64,000 bases of DNA from NCBI GenBank assembly GCA_009103225.1, contig RHPI01000773.1, positions 1 through 64,000 of the forward strand, written 5' to 3'. Position 1 is the first letter of the stretch. Each line of letters opens with the position of its first letter. The position numbers were made by a program, and so were the translations under genes. The notes under the pieces were generated by a model. It was not told the DNA's origin. It ran no database searches and worked only from the letters and a program-made list of their open reading frames with translations. The DNA comes from Chlorokybus atmophyticus. Its lineage: Eukaryota > Plantae > Mesostigma and Chlorokybus algae. Below are positions 13,471 to 34,595 of this stretch, in pieces.

Positions 13471-14895
13471 CAATGGTACGATCGTAACATAAAAATGGTA
13501 CGATGGCTCCATTGTGCAATCACATAATGAGTACCATCTAGGGTACTTTTGATGGAACTGTTGTACCATTGCAATGGTACTATTGTTCCCATGAGGTTGC
13601 CAAGTATACCTTACCGGACTGACAGGTATCCGCCGCCATCGCTCGTCCCTCTTATGAGACTTCGTTGGGACTGAGTGGTCATTAGCTTACCAATGTAGGT
13701 TGGTCGCCGCCGCGGCTAATGTACGGCCGGCGGCCGGCCGCGGGTCAACTCTGACTCACCGGTATCGACCGTCGCCATTAGGGGCCTGAATGTACACTTA
13801 ATTGTCATAATAGGTAGGTTGCCGTTACGGAAGCTGTATGACCGGCGGTCGGCCGTCAACATATGTTGCTGTCACGTCACCACCGGTAGGCAACAATCCA
13901 CTGTACTGAACGATAGGCGGTCGATAATTGAGTATAGTCCACAAAATGCACCGGCAGTCCATTTCAGTCCCTTAATGGCCCAACTCGTTAGGTCAGTTAG
14001 GGTCAGATATGGTCAGGCACCCGACAATCCCTCAGTCTCTTGTCAGTCACCGTGTAAAATTTGCGACGGTGTTCTTGGTACTGTGATGTGTGTGTATGGC
14101 CACCTAGGTGATGCTGTGCAAGTTGTGTGTGTATGTGCATGGCGTGGTCTGAGGCTGGGCAGTTGGGTGCATGTGCCGTGCATGTGTGTAGGGTGATATA
14201 CCGTCAGCAGACTCAGCCCTGTACATATGCCCCCTCGCTAACGTCAAAAACTATCGCAACGCACTTTCACATTGCCCGCCAGAACTTTTAATGACTAACC
14301 TGCTAACAAAACCCTTGAGACCGCTAACCACACAACTAGAGGGTTGCGCAGACCTATCACACGCCACCAGCAAACACGAGCAACTCTATCCTAAGGATTC
14401 GTGGTCGAAGCAACCATGTGGGTCAAGTATAAGTGCAAAAGTTGCACCTTTGCTGTGGCGCCGATACTCAACCAATCACCTCACAATTTGATGCACTGAT
14501 AGGATTTGTCAATAGCTACACGACACCCATAGGTACCACTATGGTCAGTCGTCCGAGGGAATTAGGGAATCATCCGACTTTGGTTACACTTACCCTAGTG
14601 CTAGTGTGATGGCTCTTGTGTCGGGGATGAGTGTGTGACGTGATGCAATGTGCGGTGAGTCACTGGTGATGGCCTCCCGCCTCCCGCCCAATCAGCCACA
14701 CCCCTAGTTGCGGTTTACATACCTTGCTATAGTGACTTGTTGTCACTACCTCGAGCAGCATGAACATGTCAACGTAGTCATCAATTGTCATTACACAAAG
14801 TTGTTTGGATCTTGGTGAATGCATAATTTGCAACTTATATGTTGAATTTGTCAAAATTGCTTAAAGATTCCTTGTTGCAATGACAGATGGCACTA

Positions 14896-15196
14896 CCGTA
14901 GTGGTATCAACTATTTGTCGAGACGGCCTTTTGAACCTTTAGTTTTTTTCCCATCACCGGCCCAAAAACTTGGCAACTTTGCGTCATTAGCGCGGCAAAA
15001 GCCGCTGTTAGTGTACCGTTTAATACTATTAAAATTATGTAATAACTGCATTGAGATACAGTTGATATCAGCGTTGGAACCCTCGCGGTGAGTTTGTTTG
15101 ACAAAATTCGTCGCGGCGGCTTGGAGATCGGTTGATTTTTTTCGTTTCTGCCACTTTAGTAAATATTCCTATGACGAATAGTTAGTACCACTACGG
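14896..15196. mobile_element. MITE, Tc1/mariner(pogo)-like
   Basis: 24-bp TIRs CCGTAGTGGTA.. (21/24 match), flanks TA and CA, AT-rich 301-bp body. Confidence 0.6.
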
Positions 15197-16059
15197 CATA
15201 TAGCATTAATGCGTTAACGTGACAGGAACAACACCTCCGTGTAGTGACAAAATGCCTCCACATTCGTGGTCACTCTATGAGGGGAGACTAGGCCTATGCG
15301 CTGCGATGGCAGCAACTAACATTGTGAAAAGACACTTTACTGCACGCTTGAGCCGCCATTCCATCCTATCAGTCTCGACGCCAGAGACCATTGTTGGGGC
15401 AGACCTTAAACCGGTTGGATCATCGCTGTTCCCGCTGCATAACGTTGTGTTACTGCGATGGGATAAGATGGGAGTTGTGGTGTTACGTAGATTGACACCG
15501 TCGAAGTGGTTGTATTCGGCGCTTAGTTGGACGGTGCACGACGCGTGGTCTGCGCTGATTGATCAGTGTCGGCATGCTTTTGGTTCAGTCGGCTTACTGT
15601 TGTCGATCAGGCTTTGACGGACGTGGAACAGTTGAGGGTAATGGTGCGTAAACGGGGAAGTGGGCTGCTTAAACTCATGCATATCGTTTTGGTCAGTGGT
15701 TTAGCGCGGTTGCAAGTGGGTGTGGCGTTGGACGTATATCGGCTTGTAGTGAAACGCTGCGTGGATATCGCGTGGTTGTTGTGTGTGGGTTATGGGCGGG
15801 TCGGTGTTGCTGCTGCGGCGGCAGCTGTGTTGGTGTTGTGCGTATCATGGCGGCTCGTGTAGACGACGATGACCATGTGCCGTAAAGTGTTTCATTGTCG
15901 CTTGGTGGTCCGTTGCCATATATTTAGTGGAGCGCCTCGTTATACCAAGCTGGATATGAGCAGGTGGGCGCACTAGTTATGTGGGCATGTGTTAGACATA
16001 TGCGGTGTGTGTATAATGTTGCCGGCATTTGTTGGAATATTGTGTCGTGCGGTCGTCAG

Positions 16060-19000
16060 GTGCCGCTGGGATGTCCAGCCCTAATCACAGGCTCCATGTC
16101 TGCTTCTGGTGATGGCGTCAGGGAGCTGCATGTTGAGCTGCCTGGTGGGTTTGGGTTTAGATACAGTTTGCATCGTGTGCGGCAAGAGGGAGGCATGCAA
16201 TTGCGATTAAGCAGTGACCGGCTAGTTATGGAGCATGTTGTGGGTGGGGTTGTGCTCGCTCAGTAGGTGATTGCTACCACTAGTGATATGAAGCCCGGGA
16301 GGCGAAGACATTGGGTGGAGCAGTGGCATGACACTGAATGGCTATCATTTGAAGTGGGGCAGTGGAGCCTGCATCCTCTGCAAAGCGGCGACAACGGTTA
16401 TGGCGACAATCTGGGGTTGCCCCACCCACCCCCTGTAGTGGAGGGGGGTGGTTGGCAGCCAGTCATGCCTCTCGGATCAGGTGAGCAGTCACCTTTCACA
16501 CGCGTGTCGCATTTATGCGCAATGGGTTGATGCAGTCCCTGTTCATGTCCATTGTTGTGTGCATGCCAACTGTCGTGACGCTATGATCTGTGCGCATCTT
16601 CGTGTCCGATCATGCGTTGCATTACTGGACTGCTTTGTTGTGTGCATGCTAACGCAAGCGTTGATTGTTTTTGTGCTGCAGTGGTGTCACAGTCCCGAGA
16701 CCCAGCCGATGGTGGATAGAGCAATTGCTGGGTGCGTCTTATAGGTTGACACCTGCTGCCCACACATTCTGCTATTTGAGTCTAGCGCTTATGTGCAGAC
16801 AATGCGTGTGCATAGGCAGAGTTTATTTGATTGCAACGATACCGTGCTGCATGCTGTTGATGCATGTCGATTGTGCAAGCCGAAGTAGATCTCACTGACG
16901 ACAGATCAGGTGGGGTGTGGAGACTGTCAGATCCTGCCAGGCCCGTAGCATGATGCAGTTTTGAGCGATTGATAGTTGTTGATGGCTCGCTGACCGCAAC
17001 ACCCTTATGCGCAGACAATGCGTGTGCATAGGCAGAGTTTATCTGATTGCAATAATACCGTGCTTGCATGCTGGTGATGCATGTGAATTATGCAAGCCGA
17101 AGTGGATCTTACTGACGTCAGACCAGGTGGGGTGTGGAGACTGTCGGATCCTGCCAGGCCCGTAGCATGATGCAATTACAGCGACTGACAGTTGTTGATG
17201 GCTCGCTGACAGCAACACCCTTATGCGCAGACAATGCGTGTGCATAAGCAGAGTTTATCTGATTGCAGCGATACCGTGCTCGCATGCTGTTGATGCATGT
17301 GAATTGTGCAAGTCGAAGTAGATCTTAATGACGACAAACCAGGTGGGGAGACTGTTGAATCCTGCCAGGCTCATAGTGTGATGCAGTTTTGAGCAACTGA
17401 TAGTTGTTGATGGCTCGCTGACTGCGACACCCTTCTGTATAGCTGTGATGGATGTCTGTTTCATATTATTTGCGAGACCGCCAAACAGGCTGTGTATGTT
17501 TTCTCTGTGTGTGCGAGATGCGGTCAGCGTTTGACCTTTGCAAGCACAGGTGTACCAGTTGTTGCAGCATTATAGACATGCCACGACAGCTAATGTGCGC
17601 AGCTGATGACAAACTGAGAACTTTTCACTCTATCTGGTTGTCTTGGGCTGAATTGACAGCGGCTCTATCATGCAGAACTTAGGGTTTGGGAGGGTTGATG
17701 TTGTTGCTAGTGTGGGGGTGGTGCTGCATGGGAGGCGGAAGTGTGGGTGTGTTGGGGCGGCGTCGCTGCAGAGCTTGGTGTTGGTTGTGGTGGATCTGAT
17801 GTAGCGTTCACCGGTGAAGTTTTGCACACGGCGGACAGAGCGGGCGGCATGGCGGGCAGCAGCCGTCTGAGGCCAGACTTCCAGGGAGGGTTGGTTGGTC
17901 AGGCCGATGGCAACATCTGCGACGTTTTTAAAAGAAGGTATGCATGCAGTGTAAGTGCAATCCCAAAACCCTTATACAACTCCCTCCAGCGAATGTGATG
18001 TTCCCATGCATCCTGTCCCATAGTCCATGCAGTGTGTTAGGGATCATTGGCCTGTCCAGGTGATTAGTTGTGCTGTTGTTGTGTTGTTGACCAGGTTGCA
18101 GTATAAAATAAATTTGCTGCTCGCATGCATCCTGTGTTTGGTCCCATGAGTGTATGAGCGACACGTTGATCAGCATGGCAACTGCAGCAATTTGAACGCA
18201 TACATTGTTATCAGTATTGATGCTTTCATATGGAAGCGGCGTAGCCAATCGTGCTCAAGTTGTGACGTAAGGAATGGCATTCGTCATGCTCAAACGACAG
18301 GTCTGAGTTCACTGGTTGTTGCAATGAATGCCAGTGCATGCGTACAGCGTACGAATGCGAACTGAAGGCCAAGGATGTGGAGATGATGATGAAGATGCGC
18401 GCGCAGCTTCAGAATAAGGACAAACAGCACAAGGCCTTCGAGAAGCAAGTGATTAAGTGTCGCAGGCAGCAAATGACAGTGCCGTGTAATAGTATTGCTG
18501 GCCAATGAAAGACTGTGTACTGATGGGCATTGTGCCTGTTGGGCAGGTCACATGCCTAGTGCGGACAATTAAAGAGCTGAGGCGCAAGTTGGAGGTGCGA
18601 AAGGCGGCGCGCCAGGAGGAAATTAACAAGGTGACTAGTGCTGTAGTCTCATGGTCAGGGGTTGTGTGAAATAACGGTCAAGCTATACTTGTGTGCATGG
18701 CTCTGCTCTTCTTCTACGTATTCTGCCTTTCACTAGGTGTGAACATGGGCATTCATTGCCAAATGCAGGAATCATGCTTGTGGTGCCAGAACATGCATGT
18801 AGAGCGGTGCATTTGTTGTCACATGCGTATGTGACTCTGTTTGAATATGGGCCATCATTGCCAGATGCAGGTCCTTAAGGACAAAAAGTCTAAGTACAAA
18901 GACCATTACAGGCGCAGCGAGAGCGTGATCTCTTAGTTGACCTGGAAGCTACATCTGGTTGTCAACAAAGCATACAGAGACATTGATGAAGCATCTGTCA

Positions 19001-19200
19001 GTGAGCAGAGTGACGCTGGCAAGGAAGAGTATGGCGCGTACAACGAAGCAGCTGTGCACATGGATGAGCCTTTTGAGGCGCCATCGTATACGTTGCATGG
19101 AGACTGAGTTGTGCCTGGCCACCGGCACACGTATGCAACAGGTGGCCATGTTGACATCTGTCCAATTTTGGTAGTGTTGCATGCCAGCCATGCCTGATGA
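16060..19200 (+). pseudogene. Decayed spliced cargo gene of unknown function with coiled-coil exons
   Basis: Exon 16060-16480 (AG/GT bounded, one in-frame TAG), then exon-like pieces ECELKAKDVEMMMKMRAQLQNKDKQHKAFEKQ, LVRTIKELRRKLEVRKAARQEEINK|gt, ag|VLKDKKSKYKDHYRR. Confidence 0.45.
16788..17434. repeat. Three tandem copies of a ~216-bp unit
   Basis: Units start CTTATG(T/C)GCAGACAATGCGTGTGCATA at 16788, 17004 and 17220. Confidence 0.9.
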
Positions 19201-19301
19201 ACAGTGTCTGCTGAAATAGCATATGTATAACTCATTGCTGAATAACTGTGTGATGAACTCTTAGCATGTGTACAACGCTGGATTCGCAGTCGGACTCATG
19301 T

Positions 19302-20473
19302 CTATGGTATGGTAGTAAAGGTGACTGGTAGCTGCCTGGCACTACCTTGCAAGACCTTAGGCTGACCATGACAAGGGGCCGCTGCCGAGTGTGTATCCTT
19401 CAAATTAAACATCTGCCTGCCTATGTACTCAGAATACGCAGGTGGGATGCACTCGACTAGTGTGGGCTCTGCTTGTATCCAACGAATGCATGATGCCTGC
19501 TGCCAACCGGTGAGTGTACCACGGGATGCTGCTCTGCCATATGCCGGGAACATTTGTAGCGTTGCCTGCCCTGCGTTGGACGCTCCATTGCTGCCTCTAT
19601 GGCCAGACAAGTTGCCTAGGCTTTTCGACTTGTGGTCACATACAAGATCTGCGTCGAGGATTGGATTTGTTTCATAGATTCTGTGTCAGAACGTAGGCAG
19701 CCCAAACATCGTTCCACACAGCACCATGTTGGTCTCCATGTGAACAGCAGCGAATGGTACATTCTCCATTATGTACGGTGTCCCACAAGCTTGCAGTCAA
19801 CTGAGCAGGTTGGGTAGGAGAGTGCTGTGCTGCCAATGGGCATCATGGGTTGTGCGTTGCGCCTCAGGTATGCATGTCACATATGCTTGGCATGGTGGAC
19901 TAGCCCAAATCAAGTCGTAGCCGGTAAGATCGTGTGTCATGGCATCACCTTGCATGAATGGAAATGGATACTCCGGTTGTGCATTGGTGTCCATGCCAGT
20001 AACGTTAAAGCCAGCGCGGTAAAGTCCCATGCTGGCTGCACCACCGCAGCAACAAAGGTCCAGCGCCCTTGGTCAATGTGGTACACCGTCACCACGGATG
20101 TGAGTATGTGTGAAAAGGAGTGGTGTTGAGTCGGTCCACAATGGTAGGGAGGGCAATGGTGGGGTGGCCTTGCGATGTTGCTATACACGTTGTCCTCCAA
20201 GCAGTATGCAACACAACCTGCCATTGTGCGTGAAAGTGACGGCCACACTGTGCAATGCCAGCTTTAAGTGCTGCACATCGTCATCCTCACAGCGGACGGA
20301 GTGGCGGCCTGCCAAAGACGGCATGTCAGTGACTGCAGGGAACATGGGTGGTATGACAGGTACGACAACAACTATGTGGTCTCACCGCTGTCAGTGCTGT
20401 ACGCGTAAATGGCGCCACTGTACCAACTCGAATCCGCTGGCCGGTATACCATGACAGCACTGCCAATCAACGC
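19302..20473 (-). pseudogene. 3-prime part of cargo gene: Tudor domain plus phage/bacterial-type C5-cytosine DNA methyltransferase
   Basis: Exon 20473-20386, GT-AG intron 20385-20309, exon 20308-19302. Tudor: LIGSAVMVYRPADSSWYSGAIYAYSTDSG/RHSVRCEDDDVQHLKL. MTase: [67 protein letters not shown]. Four in-frame stops, no frameshift. Confidence 0.85.
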
Positions 20474-21114
20474 GACATGTAACGATGCTCGTGCTCACAT
20501 ACACAGCACACAAGTCATACAACACATGTGTGCAGCTGAGCACAATCTTCACACCGGAACCTTGCCTTCACTCGCGCACGCACGCACGCGTCGAGCGCGC
20601 ACACGCACACGAACACTACTACTTCTCACGCCAAGCAAGAACGCAGCAGTGTGCCTTGGACCACAACTCCCTCAAGCATGCACCAGCATACTCACAGCAG
20701 AGAGCAGAAAACAAAGTTGGTTGCATTACACAGGGTTTTTCTATCTATACAAGCACTAGGAAGAAATAGCCTAATTAACAGGCATTTCATTATTCACTAC
20801 CAAATCTAAAGGCAGGTCCAAGTGCAGGCTCCCCGCCACGCGCGTTGGGCCTTCGGCGGCTGTGTGACTGTGCAGTCCGCGTCACCTGGCACTGCACAGC
20901 GCGTGTCCAGTCAGCGGCTGTGTCACAACCGCGTGGCAGGTGGGTCACGTCGCCGAATTAGCTGCTGTCGAGCAGGTCGCAGGCGAGTCGCGCGCGGCAG
21001 CAGGGGCAGGCGCCACATGGGCTTAATAAAGCTCATAAAAGCCCTCATCAAGCCAGCAAAAAAGGCAAAATAAGTACTTTATGTACAATAAAATACAAAA
21101 AATGCCCCAGGCTG

Positions 21115-24100
21115 TTACACCTCTTCCCCCCCGGGGAAGCTTCGTCCTCGAAGCTGACGACTGCCTCCTCTGGCCTTGTAGTCTTGCAAGACCTGTTTGG
21201 CATTGGTAAAGCTCTCCTCGGGCTCGTATGTCGCCTCGTGCATTGGATAGCCACGCCACTTCACCAAATACTTGCGCACGCCTCGGATCAGCTTGTCCGT
21301 GACAATTGCTTCCACTTCCCACTCAGCCTCACCTTCACGAACCACATCTGGAGGCGGACGAGCTGGTGGCTCCCCTCGATAACCTTTAAGAAGCGAGACA
21401 TGAAAAACAGGGTGCACATGCATGGTATTGGGCAGCTCCAGCTTGTAGGCCACCTTCGAGATGACCTTGATCACTTTAAAGGGCCCAAACCATCGCTCAC
21501 TCAGCTTGCGCACCCCCGTGACCAGCTGCACATGCTTGGTTGAAAGCATTACAAGGTCACCCTCCTCGAACACAACATCCTTGCGACGCGCATCGGCGTA
21601 TTGCTTTTGCCGGTTTTGCGCCACAAGCAGAGCCTCTCGAGCTGCCTTGGTAATGTCGGCACACCTTTCAAGAAAGCCGTCCACGGCCTCCACATCTGAA
21701 CTTTGCATGCTAGGCACCCACGCCGTCAATGGCGTCAATGGATGTTGCCCATAGTTCATAAGGAAAGGTGTCACGCCCGTGCTTGCACTCTTGTGGTTGT
21801 TAATGGTGAACTCAATCAGCTCCAGCATGTCTCCCCAATTGTCTTGGCGGCTGTTCACATAGCACCGTAGCATGTCTTCGATGACGCGGTTGGCGCGCTC
21901 CGTTTGGCCGTCCGTTTCAGGGTGGTACGCGGTGCTGAACTTCAAGCTCGTGCATAGAGTTGCGTGGAGAGCTCTCCAGAAGTTGCCAGTAAACCGCGGG
22001 TCTCTGTCACTGATAATGCTTCTTGGAAGGCCATGAGAGCGCACCACATGCTTGATGAACAACTTGGCAGCCTCGGGAGCTGTGCAAGTCTCCGTACATG
22101 GCGCCAATCGCACCATTTTGCTAGTCTTGTCCACAAACACCAAGATAGCATCATGCCCTTCACGTGTCCGTGGCAGCCCCGTGATGAAGTCAAGAGTAAC
22201 TTGCTCCCACTTCGTCAAAGGTATCGGCAATGGTTGGAGCAGCCCACTGGCGCGTTGATTGCTCGCCTTCACCCTTTGACAAGTGTCGCACAATGCCACA
22301 TAGTCCTTAACGTCACGATGCATCTCCGACCAGAAAAATTTCTGTTTCAACAAGGCTAGTGTCCGTTCCAGCCCTTGATGACCAGCCATTGGCACATCAT
22401 GCGCTTCCTTCATCAATGCCACGCGCATGTGCGCAATGTTGGGTATGTACATGCGATCGCCATGCCATAGCAGCCCGTCCTTCAATGCCCAAAGGCCGCT
22501 ATGTTCAGTCCCATTCTCCAACGCCTCAATGGTCTTCTCCCCCACCGCGTCCTCATGCAATAAGGCACGGATCTGGTCAAGCCACTTGGGCTGCACTTGC
22601 ACCACCGTTTCAAGCGCGTTGAGTTGACGGCTTAATGCGTCCGCAACCTTATTTGAAGAGCCCGGCTTGTACTTCACTTCAAAGTCGAAGAGTTGGAAGA
22701 ACTCGAGCCAACGAGCTTGCCGCCGTGAGAGGTGAGGCTGCGTTTGAAGGTACCTTAATGGCGAGTGGTCCGTCTCAAGTGTGAACCGCTTGCCTTCAAG
22801 GAAACAACGCCATTGCCGTAGCGCTAGCACCTGCGCCAGCAATTCCTTCTCATGAACAGGGTAGTTGAGCTCAGCCCCGCTCATCTTCTTGCTGAAATAG
22901 GCCACTGGTTGCAAGCCGTTGCCGTGATCCTGCTGCAAAACAGCCCCAATAGCCTTGTCGGACGCATCACACGCCACCACAAAGGGCAATTGCATGTTGG
23001 GATGCAGCAGCACGGGAGCCGATGTCAGGGCCTCTTTCAAGTCGGAAAATGCCTTTGTTGCAGCCTCCGACCAGCTCCAAGCCACCCCCTTCCTCAACAA
23101 TGCCGTCAATGGTGCCGCCAAGTGCGAAAAGCCCTTTACAAACTTACGATAGTAGCCGGCAAGCCCTAGGAACGACATGACACCCTTCACGTCCTTCGGG
23201 GCAGCCCAATCGCGCACCGCGGCAAGCTTGCTTGGATCTGCCTTGATTCCTTGCTTGGATACAATGTGGCCAAGGTATTCTACCTCTTCAAGCAAGAAGC
23301 GGCACTTGTTGAGCTGAGCAAACAACTTGTGTGTACGTAAACGCTGCATCACCTCGTGTAGCAATGCCACGTGCTCTCTCTTGCTCTTTGTGTACACAAG
23401 GATGTCGTCGAGGTACACTAGCACGCCCTTGCCAATCAGATCAGCAAAGACCTCATTCATCAAGGTTTGAAAGGTTGCCGGAGCATTTGTCATGCCAAAG
23501 GACATCACCAACCACTCATAGTGGCCATAGCGAGTGTTGAAAGCCGTCTTCTCAACGTCTTCGGGCGCAACACGAATCTGATAGTAGCCACCAGCTAGGT
23601 CCAAGCTTGAGAAGAACTCAGCACCCTCGAGCTGCTCCAACAACTCATCAATGCGTGGCAAAGGGAACACATTCTTTTTGGTGATGTTGTTGAGTGGCCG
23701 ATAGTCGATGCACATGCGCAAGGCTCCGCTCTTCTTACGTACAAATAGGATAGGTGCACCGTAAGGAGACTTGCTGTGCCTGATGTACCCACGTTGTAGA
23801 AGGTCCTCGACTTGGCTCCTCGCCTCTTCGAGTTCAGCCGGAGACAACTTGTACACCGGTCGGTACGGCGGCTTGTGCACGCCCTCTATCAGTTCCACAC
23901 GGTGATCAACACTTCGCGTGGGTGGCAGACCAGCTGGTAGCCCATCCACCATGACGTCTTTGAACTCTTCAAGCAACCTCTGCACCTCGGGGTCCTTCGA
24001 ACTCTCCGAACCAGTGCCGACCAGCTCCAAGTCCGACTTGGGAGGTGTCTCACGCACCATGCACAGCCATGCATCCTTCACATTGTTCCCGGACCAGATC

Positions 24101-24801
24101 TGCTCCATCTTGGTCTTAGAAACTTGTGACACCAGCTCTGGAACCCCTCCCCTTGAGCTAGAAGCATGTTGTGGTGCAGCTTGCTGGCGCGCCGTCGTGT
24201 CGTGCGCGTCACGCGCATGCAGCACATTGCTAGCAGCCTCGACGCAGCTCACACGCTCTTGAACCACACACGCGCCTTGCATTGAAGCATTGAAGCACAT
24301 CAAAACCTCACCACCAGCTTCCGGGGTAGTGAGCACCCGCTTCCTCCAATCAATGGCGGGGTTATGTGACCAAAGCCAAGGCAGCCCCAAAATGCCATCA
24401 AAGCCGTTGTTCAGCTCGATGCAGCAAAACCGTAGGCGATCCTTCATCATCCCCACGTGCATTTCAAGCTCTTTGCTTTGCTTGGAAGCTCCTCCTGCTG
24501 GCGCATAGCCGTCCGCTAGAGCCACCGAGCCGGCATTTGCCCATGACAACCACTTGTGCCGACGCGCAACCTCACGACTCATGAAATTGCTGTTCGCGCC
24601 GCAATCCACCAGCATCTTGCACTCCATCCATGGCCCATTGCCCTCACGGATCAGAGCCATGACTCCCAACAGCTGCCTCGCCTTGTCGGGCACTCGAACC
24701 ATACCGCTTTGCGTTGCCGTTGCGCACATGCCGCCAACCGTCAACAACGCTTCCACGCCAGCCGCTGGACATTCAACATCATAGTGAGGCTGCATCACCA
24801 C
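21115..24801 (-). CDS. pol: Gypsy Pol: protease, RT, RNase H, integrase, chromodomain (probably translated as gag-pol by -1 frameshift)
   Basis: LVDCGANSNF, YLDD, DASDKAIG, HHCC and DDE integrase, GPFKV, WEVEAIV..YLVKWRGY. Confidence 0.97.
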   Translation of the reverse strand: MVMQPHYDVECPAAGVEALLTVGGMCATATQSGMVRVPDKARQLLGVMALIREGNGPWMECKMLVDCGANSNFMSREVARRHKWLSWANAGSVALADGYAPAGGASKQSKELEMHVGMMKDRLRFCCIELNNGFDGILGLPWLWSHNPAIDWRKRVLTTPEAGGEVLMCFNASMQGACVVQERVSCVEAASNVLHARDAHDTTARQQAAPQHASSSRGGVPELVSQVSKTKMEQIWSGNNVKDAWLCMVRETPPKSDLELVGTGSESSKDPEVQRLLEEFKDVMVDGLPAGLPPTRSVDHRVELIEGVHKPPYRPVYKLSPAELEEARSQVEDLLQRGYIRHSKSPYGAPILFVRKKSGALRMCIDYRPLNNITKKNVFPLPRIDELLEQLEGAEFFSSLDLAGGYYQIRVAPEDVEKTAFNTRYGHYEWLVMSFGMTNAPATFQTLMNEVFADLIGKGVLVYLDDILVYTKSKREHVALLHEVMQRLRTHKLFAQLNKCRFLLEEVEYLGHIVSKQGIKADPSKLAAVRDWAAPKDVKGVMSFLGLAGYYRKFVKGFSHLAAPLTALLRKGVAWSWSEAATKAFSDLKEALTSAPVLLHPNMQLPFVVACDASDKAIGAVLQQDHGNGLQPVAYFSKKMSGAELNYPVHEKELLAQVLALRQWRCFLEGKRFTLETDHSPLRYLQTQPHLSRRQARWLEFFQLFDFEVKYKPGSSNKVADALSRQLNALETVVQVQPKWLDQIRALLHEDAVGEKTIEALENGTEHSGLWALKDGLLWHGDRMYIPNIAHMRVALMKEAHDVPMAGHQGLERTLALLKQKFFWSEMHRDVKDYVALCDTCQRVKASNQRASGLLQPLPIPLTKWEQVTLDFITGLPRTREGHDAILVFVDKTSKMVRLAPCTETCTAPEAAKLFIKHVVRSHGLPRSIISDRDPRFTGNFWRALHATLCTSLKFSTAYHPETDGQTERANRVIEDMLRCYVNSRQDNWGDMLELIEFTINNHKSASTGVTPFLMNYGQHPLTPLTAWVPSMQSSDVEAVDGFLERCADITKAAREALLVAQNRQKQYADARRKDVVFEEGDLVMLSTKHVQLVTGVRKLSERWFGPFKVIKVISKVAYKLELPNTMHVHPVFHVSLLKGYRGEPPARPPPDVVREGEAEWEVEAIVTDKLIRGVRKYLVKWRGYPMHEATYEPEESFTNAKQVLQDYKARGGSRQLRGRSFPGGEEV

Positions 24802-24843
24802 CTCAGCAGGAGCCTCTCCAGCTACTGAGGTGAGCCGTTTCCC
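24795..24843 (-). promoter_or_regulatory. -1 programmed ribosomal frameshift signal
   Basis: Slippery G GGA AAC (24843-24837) in the gag frame, followed 4 nt later by stem CACCTCAGTAG..CTGCTGAGGTG. The -1 frame is open into pol. Confidence 0.7.
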
Positions 24844-25868
24844 GGCTGCAACATCTCCTCCTCCACCATGTTCACGCGTCCACCGCTGCGAGCGTTGCGG
24901 GCATGTGCAGCAGACTTTGCCTTATAGATAGGGCAGTTGGAGCGCACGTGATCAGCAGAAGAGCACTCCCAGCACTTCCGAACAGCCTTGGCAGCCTCCC
25001 GACCCTTTGGGGCCTTCATAGCAACATGGAGCGCACCCAATTCCATTGGAGTTGGTCCCAAGCCAGCCCCCTGAGTTGCTGCAGCTCCCGAACCAGCCCC
25101 AACAGATGCGTATGAGCGATACGAACCTCCACGGAAGTGATTGTAATGTCCACGATCAGTGTTTTTGGCAGCCCCCTTGAAGTACAACACGTCCGTGCGC
25201 TCAGCAATGCGAATGGCCTCCGCGAGAGTCTTGGCGTCACGAAGCTCAACTTCCTTGCGACAAAGAGTCTTCAACCCGCGCGTGTAGCGGTCCAGCTGCT
25301 CCTCCTCAGTCATGTTCGGTACAGAGAGCACAAGACGCTGAAACGCAGAGGTATAGGCCATCACGGACTGCGTTTGCACAAGCGTAGAGAGCTGGTCGCG
25401 TGCCGTCTTCACACTCTCCACCGGTACGAACTGTTTCTTCACCTCAGCAGCCAGCTCAGCCACGGTAGTGAAAGGAACCTCAAGACCAGCTTCCACACGA
25501 GCACAACGATGACGCCACCACACAAGTGCAGCTCCCTCAAAGAAAGTAGCAGCCACATCGACACGGAGATGTATAGGTACCTCGGTGAGCTTTAACCATG
25601 TCGAAACGGCAAACACCCATTCCTCCACACAGTCACCGTCCCTCTGACCCTTGAATGGCTTTGGTTTTGGTAGCTTCACATGACGAGAGGCTGATGGGGC
25701 AACCACAGGAGCTGTAACGGGCGTGGACGCGCGCGCTTGCGCCATGGCTTGTTGAAATTGTGCCGCTTGAGCTTGGGCAGATGCTTGGACACGTTGCAGC
25801 TCCTCATGAGCAGCTACCAGCACTTGCTGAAGCTCCACAACACGTGCATCATCCATGGTAGCGTCCAT
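24822..25868 (-). CDS. gag: Gypsy Gag with zinc knuckle
   Basis: 348-aa ORF, retrotransposon gag motifs, GPTPMELG, CWECSSADHVRSNC. Confidence 0.95.
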   Translation of the reverse strand: MDATMDDARVVELQQVLVAAHEELQRVQASAQAQAAQFQQAMAQARASTPVTAPVVAPSASRHVKLPKPKPFKGQRDGDCVEEWVFAVSTWLKLTEVPIHLRVDVAATFFEGAALVWWRHRCARVEAGLEVPFTTVAELAAEVKKQFVPVESVKTARDQLSTLVQTQSVMAYTSAFQRLVLSVPNMTEEEQLDRYTRGLKTLCRKEVELRDAKTLAEAIRIAERTDVLYFKGAAKNTDRGHYNHFRGGSYRSYASVGAGSGAAATQGAGLGPTPMELGALHVAMKAPKGREAAKAVRKCWECSSADHVRSNCPIYKAKSAAHARNARSGGRVNMVEEEMLQPGNGSPQ

Positions 25869-26596
25869 AAACAGAAAAATACCTCACACACCAAAGAGAT
25901 AGTTAATATCCCCTTAAAACAAGAAACCCAACCCCTCCAAGGGCTCCGATACCACTGTAACGATGCTCGTGCTCACATACACAGCACACAAGTCATACAA
26001 CACATGTGTGCAGCTGAGCACAATCTTCACACCGGAACCTTGCCTTCACTCGCGCACGCACGCACGCGTCGAGCGCGCCCACGCACACGAACACTACTAC
26101 TTCTCACGCCAAGCAAGAACGCAGCAGTGTGCCTTGGACCACAACTCCCTCAAGCATGCACCAGCATACTCACAGCAGAGAGCAGAAAACAAAGTTGGTT
26201 GCATTACACAGGGTTTTCTATTTATATAAGCACTAGGAAGAAATAGCCTAATTAACAGGCATTTCATTATTCACTACCACATCTAAAGGCAGGTCCAAGT
26301 GCAGGCTCCCCGCCACGCGCGTTGGGCCTTCGACGGCTGTGTGACTGTGCAGTCCGCGTCACCTGGCACTGCACAGCGCGTGTCCAGTCAGCGGCTGTGT
26401 CACAACCGCGTGGCAGGTGGGTCACGTCGCCGAATTAGCTGCTGTCGAGCAGGTCGCAGGCGAGTCGCGCGCGGCAGCAGGGGCAGGCGCCACATGGGCT
26501 TAATAAAGCTCATAAAAGCCCTCATCAAGCCAGCAAAAAAGGCAAAATAAGTACTTTATGTACAATAAAATACAAAAAATGCCCCAGGCTGTTACA

Positions 26597-27230
26597 CCAC
26601 CCTCATTGCGACGGCGGCGGTGCGTTGCAAGGGTGTCCAATATGCCGACAGTCATTGATGTGGTCTGGGAATGCTCAATGTTGCCGACTTGCATAGCGTA
26701 CGTTCCACGTCCGCAGCGTGGTAGTTGGCATGGCTGCGCATTGCTCTCTCTCGGCGCAGGACATTGTGCATAGCTGTTGTTGCCTCTCATATCTTGATCT
26801 TGTCGGCGGTTAGGTGCCTGCGGCGAGAGACTGGGACGCAAGTATGGCATATACCGCATGGGTTGCCCATTCCATTTGAAGGCAGAGCACTGACAGGCAT
26901 TGCAGGTGCACTCTGATATGAAGAACTTTCATTTTTGCAGCGATAAATGGCTCTGCAGTCAAGGATGTGTTGCCCCGCGGCGTGGTGGTGCCAACATGCT
27001 GCGGTGAAGCCGAATCGCTGGTGGTAAGCCTGGCATTGGGATTGGTGTCGGGATAGACGAGAACGCTGACCGTTGCTAACGATGTATGCATGGCAGACGG
27101 TGCATGTGAGTGTTGGCGCCATTGGAGGATGGGACCACACAGTGCACGGTCTAGAATTGAACAGCGTCCTTGCGACATCAGGCGGTGAGCCGCCTCTCCG
27201 ATTGCTGAACCATAATAAATCGAGGTACAT
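26597..27230 (-). pseudogene. 5-prime part of cargo gene: Cys/His zinc-finger-like region
   Basis: MAPTLTCTVCH..RLSRHQSQC (ATG 27122) and PCGICH..RRRHL. The frame continues through two TGA codons to the Gypsy edge and joins the Tudor exon if a 5-bp TSD is removed. Confidence 0.55.
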
Positions 27231-27281
27231 CCTTATTTTGTGAGTCCAACGTATCGGTCCATCACATGCTTTCAGACGCAG

Positions 27282-30200
27282 TCAAATGCCATCCTTGTCC
27301 ATGTTGGTGAGGTCTTCCACGTCGCTGTCGCTGTCGCTGTCATCAGAGTCGTCAAAGTCCCAGTCTATGTCCACATCCACATGTGCAAAAACTGGTGCGG
27401 CAGTCATTGGCATGGCACTTGCGCATGGTGCAGCGTCTTGTGCACCGGATGGCTCCCGGGGGCTGTGGTTGTCACAGCCCGAACAGCTACAGCTGTCGGT
27501 GCATGCTTGTCCTGCTTTCCTTGCATTTGCAATTTTTGCTGATGCATCCGCTAGTCTTGCAACCACAGCCTTTCATCAGCATCCGCCTCCTGCTCTTGGA
27601 AATGCATGTTCTCCGGGAGATCTTGAACTGCAGTCCACACACCGTCCACTTCCTCAAAACCATACTCAGCCAGGTCAGGGAGGTGCATTTCCGCCTCACA
27701 GCTTTGCATCCACATTTGCACGGCATATACCGCACGCAATGCATGCAGCCATAGCGCATCCACTGTGGGCATCGTTTCCCTTGGTGTTGCAGCTTCTTCC
27801 ACACTGTTTTGTGGATGGCTTCCAACCAGTTGCCCAAGTATACCTTATTACTTGTTGTGGCGTCAGGTCCATGGAGCTCGTAGAATAAGGATGCTGGCGT
27901 GCCGCTGTCAAATGTCAAATGAACTGGGATACTTCTCGTAATATATACAGCCCAGCAGGCGCAGCACTGCAAAGCACATCTCATGCGCCACATTTACTTA
28001 TGTCGCCAGTAATGAAGTTGGCGTGCTGAGCCATGACAGTCCGCCATATGAACTGCTTGGAGATCCCAACAATGAATGAAGTGTAGTCGCTGCCCGTGGC
28101 AGCATATACAAGCAGCAGCCACCATCCCCTGCGGCCAACGCGCATGCTGGCGACTTGATGCATGCAGCTGACATGTTCCCGCAAGGTGTTTGAGTTGATG
28201 AATGGTGGACGAGTGGACCCACAGGAGTGCTGGGCCACCTGCACACATACCTCCTTCAGAGACGTATCCCAGCTCTCAGTCACCGCCACACCGATCATCG
28301 TAACATCCGTATCCGGTGACTATATGAGGATGTTGTTGTCGGGTGCGCAGTGGGCATGCACCCACTGCGCAGGAGTCTGCCTCGCCATGGTTGCAGCTAT
28401 AATCTGCCACAAAGTAGACAGATACTTGGTTGTCGTTGTTGCGTGCAACAACTTTTGCGAGGTCATCAAACTCAGTACTGTCAGCACCTTCAGCGAAAAT
28501 AGCCTCCTGGTCTGTCCGCAAATGATCCTGAAGCATGGCTAGCATGTGCTCCGTAATAAGTTCACATAGTGAACGCTTGAGATTGCGGGCCTTTAACACA
28601 TCACGCCATGATCGCAGCAGCTCTGTATCCAGAGTCAGCCTGCCTCCTGACGAGGAAGCCACGCCGTCGCGCGAGCGCTGCAATGACGACTTGACGCCAC
28701 TCTGCAGCCAAGGAGTATCGAACACCACATGGACGCTGCGCACAGCTAAGTTGGCCAAATGGCTGAGGACCGAGGTACGCATGAGCTGCACTATGTAATC
28801 CTTGATTGTTCCTTCTGTCATGTGGCATTCCTTATTTATTGGAAACATGCCCTCTAGGATGACGCAGTCAACCCCTGGTGGAGAAGTCCGGCTCCAGCAC
28901 GGTGCATCGAGTGATGCAACTTCCGACAGGAAGTTGGACTTGTCTGCGGACCACATCTTGCTTGTCAACTCTTCAAAGAGAGCTTTAGGGTGTTCACAAA
29001 ATTTGGCTATGACTGCAGATTTGTCAGCGCCGATTGCTGCTAGACGCTTGGCCACCAGCATTTTCTGTCGATACTGTTTGAGCACTGTCGCTTGATTAGT
29101 AATGCGTTGCTTTGCTGGCGCCATTGTCTTCAAGTTGAATCGCCAACTAACTTTGTACAGAGCTTTGGGCTTCTCTGCAAATCTCAACTTCCACAAAGGA
29201 CTTCATTGACTCACTACCGACTTAATAGTGGCGATCAGCCGAAGCAGCTGGCGTTGCAGGCGCCCCTGAGGTAAAGTGAATCAGCTGTAATTGGTGAGGG
29301 CGGGCCAACGCTTGAGTGTTCAGAAAAAGGTTTGCCATGTGCTGCAGATCGCTGCCGTACCTTGTCGCATCCTTGGCGAGGCTGCGCAGTACCCTCTCGT
29401 GGTCATCGTCAGCGTCATCGTCTAACTCGTTGTTGAGCAATGTGTTGCTCAGCAGCATCTGCTTCTGCAGCTGCTTGTGCGATTGGCTACGCTCGCCCAA
29501 ATACATTGATATATGTCGCAGCTGTTCCTGTGTAGGGCGGCAAATTGACATCTTCATATCTCTGTTGACCATGGACTCGTGAGCTTTGTTGAGTGCCACC
29601 ATGCGACCGGCAGCACCAGTGAGACTAAGTGCAAAGCCACCAGATGCCAGCATCTTGTGCAAGTCCCGAGGCATGACCTGCAAGTCCCCCAGATGCAGAG
29701 TCATAACCTATGGATAACGGTAGCGGTCCCACGCAAATGGCAGAGGACCAAGCCCCTTTTATGTGGCCATTCGCATGTGGCATATCTTCTGGCGCACAGA
29801 GCAAAAGACGCCGAGATAATTGAGCATGTCGCGATTGACGAAGTTCCACCACAACTGCCAAGTGTGGTCAGTCATTGCCTGTTATGCAAACCCATTGCGG
29901 AAGAATGTGGCAGACTTGCACGACATCACCCCATGCTCTTCTTGGTCAGCGCGACACGTGCTGAGCACTTCTTCGCTCGCACTCACCACCTACAGTTTGT
30001 ACATATGTCTGTACAGGGCCTCCCACACCTTGCACAGAAAGTTATGTGTCTTTTTCCGGTGTGAGCCATCCGCCAGATGGTTGCGCGCAGTAGATGCTGT
30101 AAATGCGGCTTCCAGTGACATCGCATCAAGTCCAGCGTCCCCTGCCATCTTCACGAGCACTGGCTGCATGTTCATGAGGACATGGAAATCTCCCGGCAAG

Positions 30201-33200
30201 AGCGTAACCCAATCTCCGTATCCCGGCCCTGCCTTCTTGAGGGAATGCATCGACAAAAATGTATACTGGTCACCGGTCTCACATATCTTGCTGCTGTCAT
30301 CAATAATGCCCACCTTGTCACGCAGGTGGAGCAATGCGTGCTTGAGATTATCAATGTTGTGGGGCAAAATGGCAGGACTGGCAGGTTTTTTATGTCATTG
30401 GCCACTACTGTTGTCTCTCCAGTGGATATCTGCAAGTAATGAGCCTAATCCTCCTTCAGCGTGGGCAGCGCAGCTGGGTCCTCCCTGGTCATCCGCCATA
30501 GCACAGTGTTATGCATTATGCTCTAAAAAGACTCCAATGCGGACGTCTCTTCAGGTTTTGGGTGGAGTATGGGGTCGCTCCGAATAACACTCGGCGCACG
30601 CGATAACGGAGCCTGTTTCAACATTGGGTCCGCCGTTGGTTGTTGAACCATCGATTCTGCCAGAGTTCTGTTCTTCAATGGCTGCCATGGTAGCAAGCAC
30701 AGCGTCAGCAAAACATGCAGAAGACTACAGTGCTTGTGACACAGGTGATCTAGATAGTAATTGTCAATCTCTCACCTGCAGAATTAGCGGTGGGAGTGCA
30801 ACACGTCCCACTGTGGATGTGAGTTGAGTTGAGGTTGCGTGGATGTCTCCTCCCTGCCTGCCCTTGTAGCGTGCCTGGTGTCCTGCCCTAATGTCAAGGT
30901 TGTCTATGGACGGCAAGACGTGCATGCCTGGCTTGTGACGAATACGACTGACGAAATTGAGATTGTGCAGTGCACGAGTATGGATGTGTCGGTCAATATG
31001 ACTGCGACTAACAGACCCCCCCAGACGGTTGAGTGTTTGAATCAGCTTATTGCCTTGCAAGTGCATGTCCACCTCATCAGTGACCACCAAGTGTAATGGC
31101 GAGTATGCGAACTTGCTACGCGCATACAACGCTGTGTGCATAAGGAACAGTGTCTTATTACGGAGTATGGTGAGCGTTGATGCATGTCTCCGTCCAGGTG
31201 TTCTCAGTCGCTCCAAAGCATTGTATCAATTCAGGGCCCCGAAGACTGTGCGCAGCTGCTCGCCCGAGGCATCCCACTCCTCCTTCCAGTCCACTGAACT
31301 CAGGTCAGGGTCCGACTTGTTGCGCTCAACCTGACGTTGCCGTTCATTCTTCATGAGCCGTGAGAGCGTACGCAGCACGCCATCTGGCAAAGTGTCCGCA
31401 TCAGGTACACTGGTGCCCGCATGCGTGGCCTGTGCACTGACAGGCACCTCGGTAACGCGTGTGCCATGACGCAGGAGGCATGACAGTGGGTCCGCTTAGG
31501 CGCCGATCATTAGAGTGCCCTGCTGCATGCCACCAGTCTCAACGACCACTGCACCTGGCAAGCGTTGATGAACAGCTCGCAACAGATAGCGCGCCGGCGT
31601 AATGCTGTACTTGGCAGCAATTGCCGTGAGGAAATTAACAGCATCTCTCTGCAAAAGTTGCTGCGCAACTTCCCGAACGGCACATGCCAACGGCTCCACG
31701 CAATCCTCAGTCGCCACACTAGTCACTTCTGCTTCAAAGAGCTGCCGCACCTCTTCAGCAACACGCGCATCGTGCTGTGTTTGTCGCACTGATGTGCTAG
31801 TGCATATTGTCTCCCTTACGCCGGCAATGACATCTTCCAACTCCACCAGCTTACTGCGGTACCCTTCCAGGTCCCTCTCAGCCTTGAGCCTGTGACGCCT
31901 TTCCCCGTTACCGACTTCTGCCTCCTCGCGCACCCTTGTCTCCAACACCTAAAGGGACACTGTCAGCAGAGTGCCCAATCGACCCAAGGACCGCCAGGTG
32001 CAACCACACATCGGTACAAGCAACACCTCAGCATGTTGTTGCAACTCATCTAACTCGTCCTCCTGTTGGCGTGCGCGTGCAGACTCCTCACACCGCCGCT
32101 GCTCCTCCAAAAGGTGACGGGCGATCTTGCTATGTGCTACCTGACACGACCATCCACAGCATGAGAGTGCAGTCCTACACCATAGAGACACCCCAGGTGG
32201 AGAGACTGCAGGAGGAGTCTTCATTCAGTGCTCACCTCACACTTTTTGCGCAATTGCTGAACCGCTTGCCTGGCGTCCAGCAATGCTTGGGACTGGCCTA
32301 TGCGTCCCACCAATCCCAGATCACGCATAGCCGCTCGCAACCCTTCAATCTCCACAGCTTGCTTGTCTGGCTCCTTGGACGCTTGGCTCAGCTGCGTTGT
32401 CAGCCTTTATACTTGCAGCCTGAGACACTGCGTGCCAACATACAACACAGACATGACACACTGAGCACACCCACGAACGGGGTGTTAGTAGTAGTAGGTA
32501 GATTAGGTAGAGTAGCCCGGTGGTGAACTACGTGGCAGTGTGAAATGTGAGTGGTATGATTGTGGGATGGTGATGGTCGTTGTGCATGAGCATATGCCAC
32601 GCGCATTGTATGTACATGCAGCATCCTGGCAACACCGTGATAGATGCTAGTGCATTTGGCCATGACCACAAACATGGACAGTGTATTGACCACTGCATTC
32701 CTCCAACCAATGCACAACTTATGCAACAGCATGATCGATGCTGCGATTGACTTGCCTACTCAAATCATGCAGTGTGTTGCACATATCCTCGCAGTATCAC
32801 ATAGCCATGCATCATGTACCTCCAATTGGCTGAACACACTTGTCTGCCTGTACGCCTTGTCTGCATGCACTCTTGCAGTCCCCATTGTATCTGAATGCAC
32901 AAGACCATGCGCATCAAAGCCGACACAGCCACCACAGGCTCTTCTTATTTGGTGTATTATTGCACATCATAGCACGCTAGCAGCGACCACTACCAGTCTT
33001 ACAGCCTTATCAGCACTACCACTGGCTAAGGTCTATTGTGCCAAGAAACCACTTCAACTCAACTGCCAAACCGCCCACCTGGCAGTGTCCCAAGTGGTGT
33101 CCTGGGCATCCTTGGCACGTTCTTAGCAGCAGCCACCATCCGCGACAGAGTTGGATGAATCCGCACACTTTTGCCATTACGGTCCACACGCGTGTTCGCG

Positions 33201-33824
33201 GACAATTGCTGATGCAATGCATGCGCAGATGGCACCTGCTGCTGCAGACTATGCTGATGCGACTTCTGCCTCTTGCGCAGCTGAGAAGAGCCCGGCGGAG
33301 TGTTCTCTTGAATCTCGAGAGTTTCATCCTCGGAGCCTGACTGTTCCAAGTCTTCTTCCTACAAGCACACAAGTATCAGCATGATCATGCATATACAATA
33401 AGCCTGCATGCACACACAGCGTCTGCACACCCTACCTGATCATAACCAGCTGGAGACAATGCAGCAAGTTGATCAGCCTCCTGCACATGCCATGTAATCA
33501 ACCACCTACACAAAGCACGCAGCCAGTTTCATAGCATATACCTACACTGACCCACTCACCTTCACCAGCACCAGGTCATCGCCCTCCCATCTTCAGGTCT
33601 TATTACACGTCAGCGCATACAAGAAGACACTAGTAGGGTTCAAACGGATCCTCGACAAACCACACTCTTCCTTCAAACTAGTTGACATTATATTTGTCTT
33701 CATCCCGCCGGCGCTTGGCATAATCACGCTGGTTATCATTGCGTAAAGTCCTCGCTACCTCTATAGCCTCCAACTTCCAACATTGCTCCTCATAAAGCAG
33801 TGCTACAGAGCCCTCATCCGCCAT
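27282..33824 (-). pseudogene. Academ transposase-XPG/FEN1-like nuclease-CXC (Cys-rich) gene, decayed
   Basis: SIDNLD, TGDQYT, LPGDFHVLMN, SLTG..G..VALNKAHE..NRD; XPG-like HVVFD, HGEAD, SPDTDV, TGSDYTS..GISK; C-terminal GCGCKTSGCISKNCKC / CTDSCSCSGCDN. Many stops and frameshifts; start approximate. Confidence 0.8.
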
Positions 33825-34595
33825 CACCGCCACCGCCGCCGCCGCCGCCACCGCCGTCACCACACAAACAACGACACTACATTCGTCCTGCATCAACACA
33901 CCCACCCCAATCCCCAAGTTTTAATTCAAACTCAACACCGTTGACAAACACCGATATACGCTGCCGATCAGCAATGTTGACGACCAACATTTCACGCGTA
34001 TCGATATCAGCAAGCGTGAGCGACATAGCCAATAAACGAAAATTGTCACCGCTCAATTGTGTCGAGACTGAGAACACTGCTGATTGACTACCGTTTTCGG
34101 TCGTCGACAGAGCTTGCAATACGCCGACAAACACAGGTGATCCTTGAACGAACACGCCTGCCGATCAGCCGCGATCATGGCAATACTACGTATCGAGAAG
34201 ACATCGCAGCCGTCCAGTTGCTGCAATCTGCCATACCATGAGGTCTCTGGCGTCGAGACTGCTATGTCCAGGGCGGACCGCCACGTGAGCAGATATGGAT
34301 GACAGCATGCGCTGGGGCCAGATGATGAGCTAGGGTTTGCTGGCGGCGGTGGCGGCGGGGAGGGTTGTCTCGTCATCGTCCGCAGGGGGACCATACGTCA
34401 CGCGCCACACTCCCTGCAGAGACTTCTCGAGGCCTCCGCCGCGACGCCCGGTAAGGCACAGGAGGCTTCTACAGCATACTGCGTGTGGGTACATTGACCA
34501 CATACACAATGTCACAGTGCAATTACGGTGTTTGGCAGCTGTCCTGGTGTGTCTGAGCTCCTTTGAGCTTGAGGAGGCACGCACAGCGCACTACA

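Follow-up and report, generated by a model that had tools for sequence, protein, structure and literature searches.

The window analysed here, by which we mean the whole 64,000-nucleotide stretch of Chlorokybus atmophyticus DNA (positions 1 to 64,000 of contig RHPI01000773.1, assembly GCA_009103225.1), contains the remains of a gene that seems to have coupled a chromatin reader to a DNA-modifying enzyme. In the reading that we consider probable, positions 19302-20477 of the minus strand represent the 3' portion of a multi-copy gene, here in a dead copy, that encodes a Tudor domain and a cytosine C5 methyltransferase and is carried inside a DNA transposon. The gene would have at least three exons, with a plant-type Tudor domain (PDS5C/RDM15/MSH6) at the N-terminus leading directly into a small C5 DNA methyltransferase, and it would lie inside the transposon at 15370-34261, on the strand of the transposase and 3' of it. 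The joining of a Tudor reader by splicing to a small methyltransferase of prokaryote or virus type is supported by the match of the predicted reader to the RDM15 Tudor structure (PDB entry 7DE9), by the end-to-end alignment of the methylase and by the position of the gene within a transposon bounded by terminal repeats. The gene family is real and unusual; the copy in the window is dead and interrupted. Its parts are as follows.

19302..20067, minus strand: exon 3, encoding the C5 DNA methyltransferase domain in about 254 codons and ending with a stop at 19304-19302 (homolog alignment).
20068..20217, minus strand: candidate intron 2, 150 nucleotides, GT..AG, a multiple of three (enumeration of stop-free joins).
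20218..20308, minus strand: exon 2, the C-terminal half of the Tudor-like domain, containing RHSVRCEDDDVQHLKL (7DE9 match).
20309..20385, minus strand: intron 1, 77 nucleotides (alignment to the RDM15 Tudor).
20386..20477, minus strand: 3' end of exon 1, encoding ALIGSAVMVYRPADSSWYSGAIYAYSTDS, which is the N-terminal half of a Tudor-like domain whose first codons are interrupted by a Gypsy element (7DE9 and Pfam matches).

A preliminary description of this DNA had proposed a 77-nucleotide GT-AG intron at 20385-20309, and such an intron can be read there, with GT at 20385-84 and AG at 20310-09; it begins GTGAGA and ends TTTGGCAG. Its removal joins frame 1 (modulo 3; 20476-20386) to frame 2, which is the frame of the methylase, and the resulting peptide resembles a plant Tudor domain, both as first described; it matches RDM15/PDS5C without a gap through the junction. 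When the spliced domain was compared with the PDB (177,635 distinct sequences), its best match was 7DE9, the Arabidopsis RDM15/PDS5C Tudor, with an expectation value (E) of 4.7e-4 over 46 ungapped residues, and as the match continues, H-x-V, D-x-D and L-x-L are correctly spaced. For exon 1 alone, a peptide of 30 residues, 7DE9 was the only domain-level match in the PDB (E 0.065) and Tudor_KDM3B was found in Pfam at E 0.012; in a protein atlas the nearest named cluster was Agenet/Tudor_3 at 0.76, which we treat as a lead and not as evidence. Exon 2 alone gave no Tudor match. Among the 81 GT-AG pairs that read past the junction, intron 1 produced the highest score in alignment to the 7DE9 fragment (78 vs 59 for the unspliced sequence), 13.6 standard deviations above shuffles (n = 20,000).

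The Tudor domain and the methylase were also said to share one frame. This is the case once intron 1 is removed, but two stops lie between the domains, a TAG at 20183-81 and a TGA at 20075-73. Only two GT-AG pairs join exon 2 to the methylase without a stop, with donors at 20217 or 20214 and a common acceptor at 20068. The cleaner pair, 20217-20068 (CAG/GTTGTG ... CCAAG/G), is 150 nucleotides long, in phase and removes both intervening stops; its acceptor has a weak pyrimidine tract. Splicing of this candidate intron 2 would join ..THNG(R) to ALDLCCCGG, exactly at the start of free-standing homologs. Because intron 2 clears the stops and lands at the homolog start, we infer at least three exons, the first reaching up to 20386, the second comprising 20308-20218 and the third 20067-19302.

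The minus-strand segment 20067-19305 aligns in a single frame, over its full length, with small C5 DNA methyltransferases of phages and giant viruses. A 91-residue stop-free piece holding motifs I-IV matched 307 phage records, mostly of actinophages, at 43-50% identity (tblastn), and in a search of 1.84 billion representative proteins it matched 2721 at E up to 0.001; against the giant-virus-like contig L004, the methylase reached E 8e-56 (tblastn). The enzyme retains 44 of the 50 columns that are conserved in at least 80% of 95 homologs. Motif IV, ASPPCQ, is kept with its catalytic cysteine in columns that are 91-100% conserved in these homologs, as are motif VI (ENV) and the C-terminal IPPAYSEYIG. 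Within motif I, the SAM-binding loop (DLF-C-G-x-G-G), the 84%-conserved F is replaced by C and a 98%-conserved G by A; a natural homolog, P0004, also has CCC in motif I. The remaining changes at conserved columns are a single R to L, the conservative replacements I to M and F to Y, and one stop at a 92%-conserved arginine.

The reading frame of the methylase is not intact, being broken by two premature stops, and its stop-free pieces score 11 bits against a Pfam cutoff of 22 (PF00145-related). The TGA at 19688-86 (PTF-stop-HRIYE) takes the place of the first R of an R-H-R motif, in a column that is Arg in 92% of homologs, and the TGA at 19799-97 (LLS-stop-LQ) sits where conservation is lower and the closest relatives have Arg. 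Both are what CGA becomes by a C-to-T change at CpG, which is directly supported for 19799, where a 95%-identical paralog contig (run X2) reads CGA. In the methylase gene, the observed-to-expected ratio is 0.62 for CpG and 1.66 for TpG+CpA; the CpG ratio is 0.71-0.73 in the host transposon and 0.81 in the young Gypsy. The CpG depletion and the TpG/CpA excess fit methylation-driven decay, as do the two CGA-to-TGA stops.

That the gene has paralogs is seen in two independent runs, X1 and X2, whose short low-coverage DNA contigs hold exact pieces of the locus and, in addition, pieces that are 80-95% identical to it. The latter are found only in conserved coding blocks, namely motif I, PPCQ, ENV-LCG and IPPAYSEY. 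Among the 16 paralog differences listed, 9 fall at third codon positions and 8 are synonymous, which suggests that the paralogs diverged under coding constraint. An uninterrupted copy was found neither in the window nor among proteins of 50-160 amino acids, nor among the 1.84 billion representatives, the best of which were 53-66% identical, every match being virus- or phage-like.

The carrier of the gene is delimited by a perfect inverted repeat, and the transposase-like open reading frames (ORFs) lie upstream of the gene.

15370..15389, no strand assigned: left terminal inverted repeat, with CTAT before it (20-base-pair perfect repeat).
34242..34261, no strand assigned: right terminal inverted repeat, with CTAT after it (20-base-pair perfect repeat).
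27282..27566, minus strand: last transposase ORF, with a CXC-like cysteine cluster, an acidic tail and a stop at 27284-82 (Pfam TCR/CXC, E 0.029, under cutoff).

The 20-base-pair perfect repeat has an E of 4e-6 (two flanks searched, about 2 kb vs 2.5 kb), and CTAT is present on both of its outer sides. The repeats enclose the gene together with the upstream transposase-like ORFs, all on the same strand. Because the gene sits between terminal inverted repeats with a CTAT duplication, it is the cargo of a cut-and-paste element of 18.9 kb, or of 12.8 kb without the Gypsy. Within the transposase region, an ORF at 29990-30367 (minus strand) weakly matches DUF6589 at E 0.005. The ORFs in the tail at 15370-19300 gave no Pfam match. 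The 3' part of the transposon also shows a strongly positive GC skew on the plus strand (0.10-0.20 at 14001-20000).

Several points weigh against reading the locus as a spliced Tudor-methylase gene on a DNA transposon. Introns 1 and 2 are predicted from sequence, and the paralog contigs leave 20222-20446 uncovered, none of them bridging 20477/20478. Intron 1 was picked partly for improving the match, and when E is corrected for the 81 candidates it becomes about 0.04; an alternative intron of 53 nucleotides ending at 20333 also keeps the frame, inserting eight residues, and scores 61. In Pfam, the spliced peptide matches Tudor_KDM3B (E 0.006) and PTM_DIR17_Tudor (E 0.015), both under the curated cutoffs. 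A Tudor-methylase fusion was looked for and not found, either in the 150 top-ranking representatives or in 166 related loci drawn from metagenomes and IMG/VR and amounting to about 1 Mb. The transposase family was left unconfirmed by Pfam in a scan of 15 ORF pieces, which returned only the weak DUF6589 match beside the weak CXC match. Finally, methylase activity and Tudor binding are assigned by homology only, and the window copy is without key residues.

Both the Pfam scores under the cutoffs and the lack of a fused relative would also be seen if the Tudor similarity were fortuitous or a relic, the cargo being a methyltransferase alone that starts near 20067 with untranslated or intergenic sequence upstream. 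Such a gene would fit the free-standing homologs, which begin exactly at the exon 3 border, and the loss of Tudor cage residues described below. We nevertheless regard this explanation as unlikely, given that a plant Tudor tops the PDB for exon 1 alone as well as for the spliced form, that the ungapped match crosses a canonical GT-AG junction before reaching the correctly spaced H-x-V, D-x-D and L-x-L, and that the splice lands in the methylase frame.

Returning to the spliced Tudor-methylase gene, we compared its reader with the solved relative, which is also the closest sequence match of the spliced N-terminal domain. 7DE9 is the RDM15 Tudor, which binds histone H3 monomethylated at lysine 4 (H3K4me1); W616, Y623 and Y641 form its cage, with the monomethyl-ammonium held by D643 and D645 (PMC8184781). 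The equivalents of W616, Y623, Y641, D643 and D645 in the window are R, Y, C, D and D. Thus Y623 and the two aspartates are kept, whereas W616 has become R and Y641 has become C, so that two of the three cage residues are lost; E647 is in addition replaced by Q. The motif quoted in the preliminary description (W.P.D..WY and YDD) is therefore that of the family and not that of the window copy, which has Y-R-P-A-D for W.P.D and C-E-D-D-D for YDD. We take the Tudor similarity to be real and, judging from these residues, the cage of the window copy to be broken, and H3K4me1 binding by this copy would not be expected. RDM15 further differs in that it is without a catalytic domain and acts through Pol V.

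Because two of the three cage residues are gone, we do not claim a reader function for the window copy; only an ancestor or an intact paralog could be credited with it. In an intact copy, the Tudor domain would dock the enzyme on nucleosomes marked by methyl-lysine (H3K4me1 in the solved relative), and the transposon's own enzyme would then methylate cytosines in the docked chromatin. The window copy was inactivated by several events, listed here in no implied order: chromovirus insertion, nonsense changes, loss of the cage and the changes in motif I.

The enzyme had been called phage-type, which holds in the broad sense of its actinophage matches, but its nearest clade is giant-virus-like. 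In a quick tree, the window methylase groups with P0010, P0020, P0021 and P0065 (SH-aLRT, the Shimodaira-Hasegawa-like approximate likelihood ratio test, 85, which is not decisive). Together with these four proteins it has clade-specific stretches, namely H-x-H-x-W-x-H after motif IV, QMFP-x-YG and RGT..W..A. The contigs of P0010 and P0065 encode topoisomerase II, ribonucleotide reductase, mRNA triphosphatase, protein kinases, thioredoxin and a YqaJ exonuclease, with a faint match to TBP, and from this gene content they look like giant-virus DNA. The giant-virus-like methylases (on L002, L003, L005 and L006, and P0010 on L004) are thus the nearest catalytic clade, yet they differ from the window gene in having neither introns nor a Tudor domain. 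Their accessory module is instead a methyl-CpG-binding domain (MBD) inside or after the enzyme, at a position where the window copy has only a linker of about 15 residues. The MBD lies within the enzyme in P0020 (L002, 2028-3050) and P0021 (L003, 447-1616) and is encoded by a separate neighbouring gene in P0065; the MBD-bearing loci include L005 9239-10534 and L006 1064-2359. An MBD and a methylase on viral DNA make a reader-writer pairing of another kind. As a possible Tudor we also considered the N-terminal extension of P0003 and rejected it, since it is not a Tudor; its contig is that of a phage. No Tudor- or finger-like neighbour was present in the 166 metagenome and viral loci or on the contigs of the closest proteins. 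Because none of these 166 loci and none of the 150 best representatives has a Tudor or a finger, it seems that the fusion took place in the eukaryotic host lineage.

Mobile elements with their own cytosine methyltransferase are known from retrotransposons, including SymbioLINE-Dnmt and SymbioDIRS-Dnmt3 of dinoflagellates and retrotransposons of charophytes (de Mendoza et al. 2018, PMC5890265). Like the window element, these are present in many copies, many of them decayed. In contrast to them, the carrier in the window is a cut-and-paste element with terminal inverted repeats, and its enzyme is small, of giant-virus or phage type, and combined with a Tudor. PMC5890265 makes no mention of a Tudor or chromodomain, and DNA transposons with a DNMT are cited there only from marine viruses (Bao and Jurka 2013). 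Reader-writer enzymes are known from host genes, such as animal DNMT3 (PWWP), plant CMT (chromodomain) and DNMT5b with a Tudor (PMC9998398), the bdelloid N4CMT, in which a bacterial N4C methylase is combined with a chromodomain (cited in PMC12344493), and the green-algal ChloroDNMT with a PWWP (PMC12344493). These resemble the window gene in fusing a Royal-family reader of histone marks to a DNA methyltransferase and, in the case of N4CMT, in the horizontal acquisition of the enzyme. However, they belong to hosts, and their catalytic parts come from large eukaryotic or other families, whereas the window gene is transposon cargo with a minimal enzyme of virus type. A DNA transposon with a C5 methylase fused to a Tudor did not turn up in our literature search.

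Elements with their own methyltransferase (retrotransposons and marine-virus transposons) and host reader-writer fusions are thus already known separately. A cut-and-paste transposon in which a virus-derived minimal methylase has gained introns and a plant-type histone reader would bring together the transfer of a gene from virus to eukaryote, the fusion of domains through gained exons and the manipulation of host epigenetic marks by a parasite, and would constitute a compact natural "targeted methylase". The wider scenario that follows is one we can put forward only tentatively, leaning slightly to the sceptical side: DNA transposons of a streptophyte-like alga would have acquired a giant-virus cytosine methyltransferase and added spliceosomal introns and a plant H3K4me1-type Tudor, giving a mobile, chromatin-guided enzyme for de novo methylation of which the window copy is one fossil. 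If so, the element would write 5-methylcytosine at chosen chromatin, for example masking itself or reshaping the chromatin of host gene bodies. To this picture the window copy adds the exon-intron layout, support from independent reads for paralogs under coding constraint, and a caution about the zinc-finger part of the proposed protein, which lies beyond the element that interrupts the gene.

20478..26596, minus strand: intact young Ty3/Gypsy chromovirus, inserted in the gene at the first Tudor codons (long terminal repeats and domains).
26597..27281, minus strand: upstream region with a finger-like ORF and a frame-0 stretch (ORF frames).

The inserted element is a Gypsy, as had been stated, with the full set of Ty3/Gypsy chromovirus features except a target-site duplication. 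Its long terminal repeats (LTRs; 20478-21119 and 25956-26596) are 99.1% alike, with five differences and one indel, and their TG..CA ends lie in 6-base-pair inverted ends. There is a tRNA-type primer-binding site after the 5' LTR and a polypurine tract ahead of the 3' LTR, and two long ORFs encode a Ty3-type gag and a pol with reverse transcriptase (RVT_1), RNase H, integrase and Chromo domains (Pfam). The 5-base-pair target-site duplication of the preliminary description is absent, the flanks reading CGACA (20473-77) and CCACC (26597-601). With LTRs that are 99% alike, a duplication that has decayed is very unlikely; recombination between two elements or a deletion at the junction is possible. 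Because the duplication is missing, the flanks cannot be assumed to join base for base, and the frame of any join across the element is an assumption.

This bears on the three-domain protein originally proposed, about 570 residues from an ATG at 27230, in which a C2HC-like zinc finger would be read across the Gypsy site, with a 5-base duplication removed, into the Tudor and the methylase. Its Tudor-methylase join stands, as set out above; the zinc-finger join is not supported by the window copy and is in our view doubtful. The frame arithmetic is correct, in that dropping the element and five bases puts the finger frame into the Tudor frame, whereas dropping the element alone leads to the frame of ORF 26500-26859. 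The finger ORF is indeed rich in Cys and His, with C-x2-C-x15-H-x3-C and a CGICHTC cluster, and its atlas neighbours include several C2H2-like finger families at 0.86-0.89, at low recognition. However, without a target-site duplication the removal of five bases is arbitrary. Moreover, the ORF, given earlier as 27230-26597, is open (frame 2) only to 26790; a stop follows at 26789-87 and a second one, in the same frame, at 26654-52. Both could not be removed by any one in-phase GT-AG intron, and the reading of about 570 codons contains six in-frame stops, the others lying at 20183-81, 20075-73, 19799-97 and 19688-86. For the finger ORF, Pfam gave no match at E up to 1, a search of 5.8 billion proteins (81-257 amino acids long) returned no homolog, and AlphaFold produced no confident fold (mean predicted local distance difference test score, pLDDT, 43.9).

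Removal of the Gypsy alone would instead bring a 109-codon stop-free stretch (26925-26599, frame 0) into frame with Tudor exon 1. It closes with a run of basic residues immediately ahead of the Tudor, and the protein atlas shows no recognisable relative of it. The codon score per codon, -0.07 in the finger frame and +0.05 in frame 0, slightly favours the latter. Models with a single intron linking the finger ORF to the Tudor number 116 for plain excision and 0 for the 5-base removal, and no structure is singled out among them. N-terminal to its Tudor, the intact gene may thus have had a zinc finger, a further exon or no more than a short basic leader.

The finger ORF begins 50 nucleotides past the transposase stop, in the same frame and with a single TGA between. 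Because of this frame and distance it could belong to the transposase gene or to the Tudor gene, and the first possibility counts further against the zinc-finger protein. It also raises a different explanation, that the Tudor-methylase is a C-terminal or alternatively spliced extension of the transposase transcript, which would anchor the transposase itself at marked chromatin and have it methylate at that site. The shared strand, the one stop separating the finger ORF from the last transposase ORF, and the distance of about 690 base pairs from the transposase stop to the Tudor exon, with no evident promoter space, would agree with such an arrangement. We consider it improbable, as the acidic tail of the transposase ORF looks like a natural C-terminus and nothing at the locus shows such splicing.

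The chromovirus that interrupts the Tudor-methylase gene is itself a member of a repeated family. Contig depth over its LTRs is about 50-70, compared to 2-5 on the flanks (two runs), and this roughly 20-fold excess suggests at least some twenty LTR copies.

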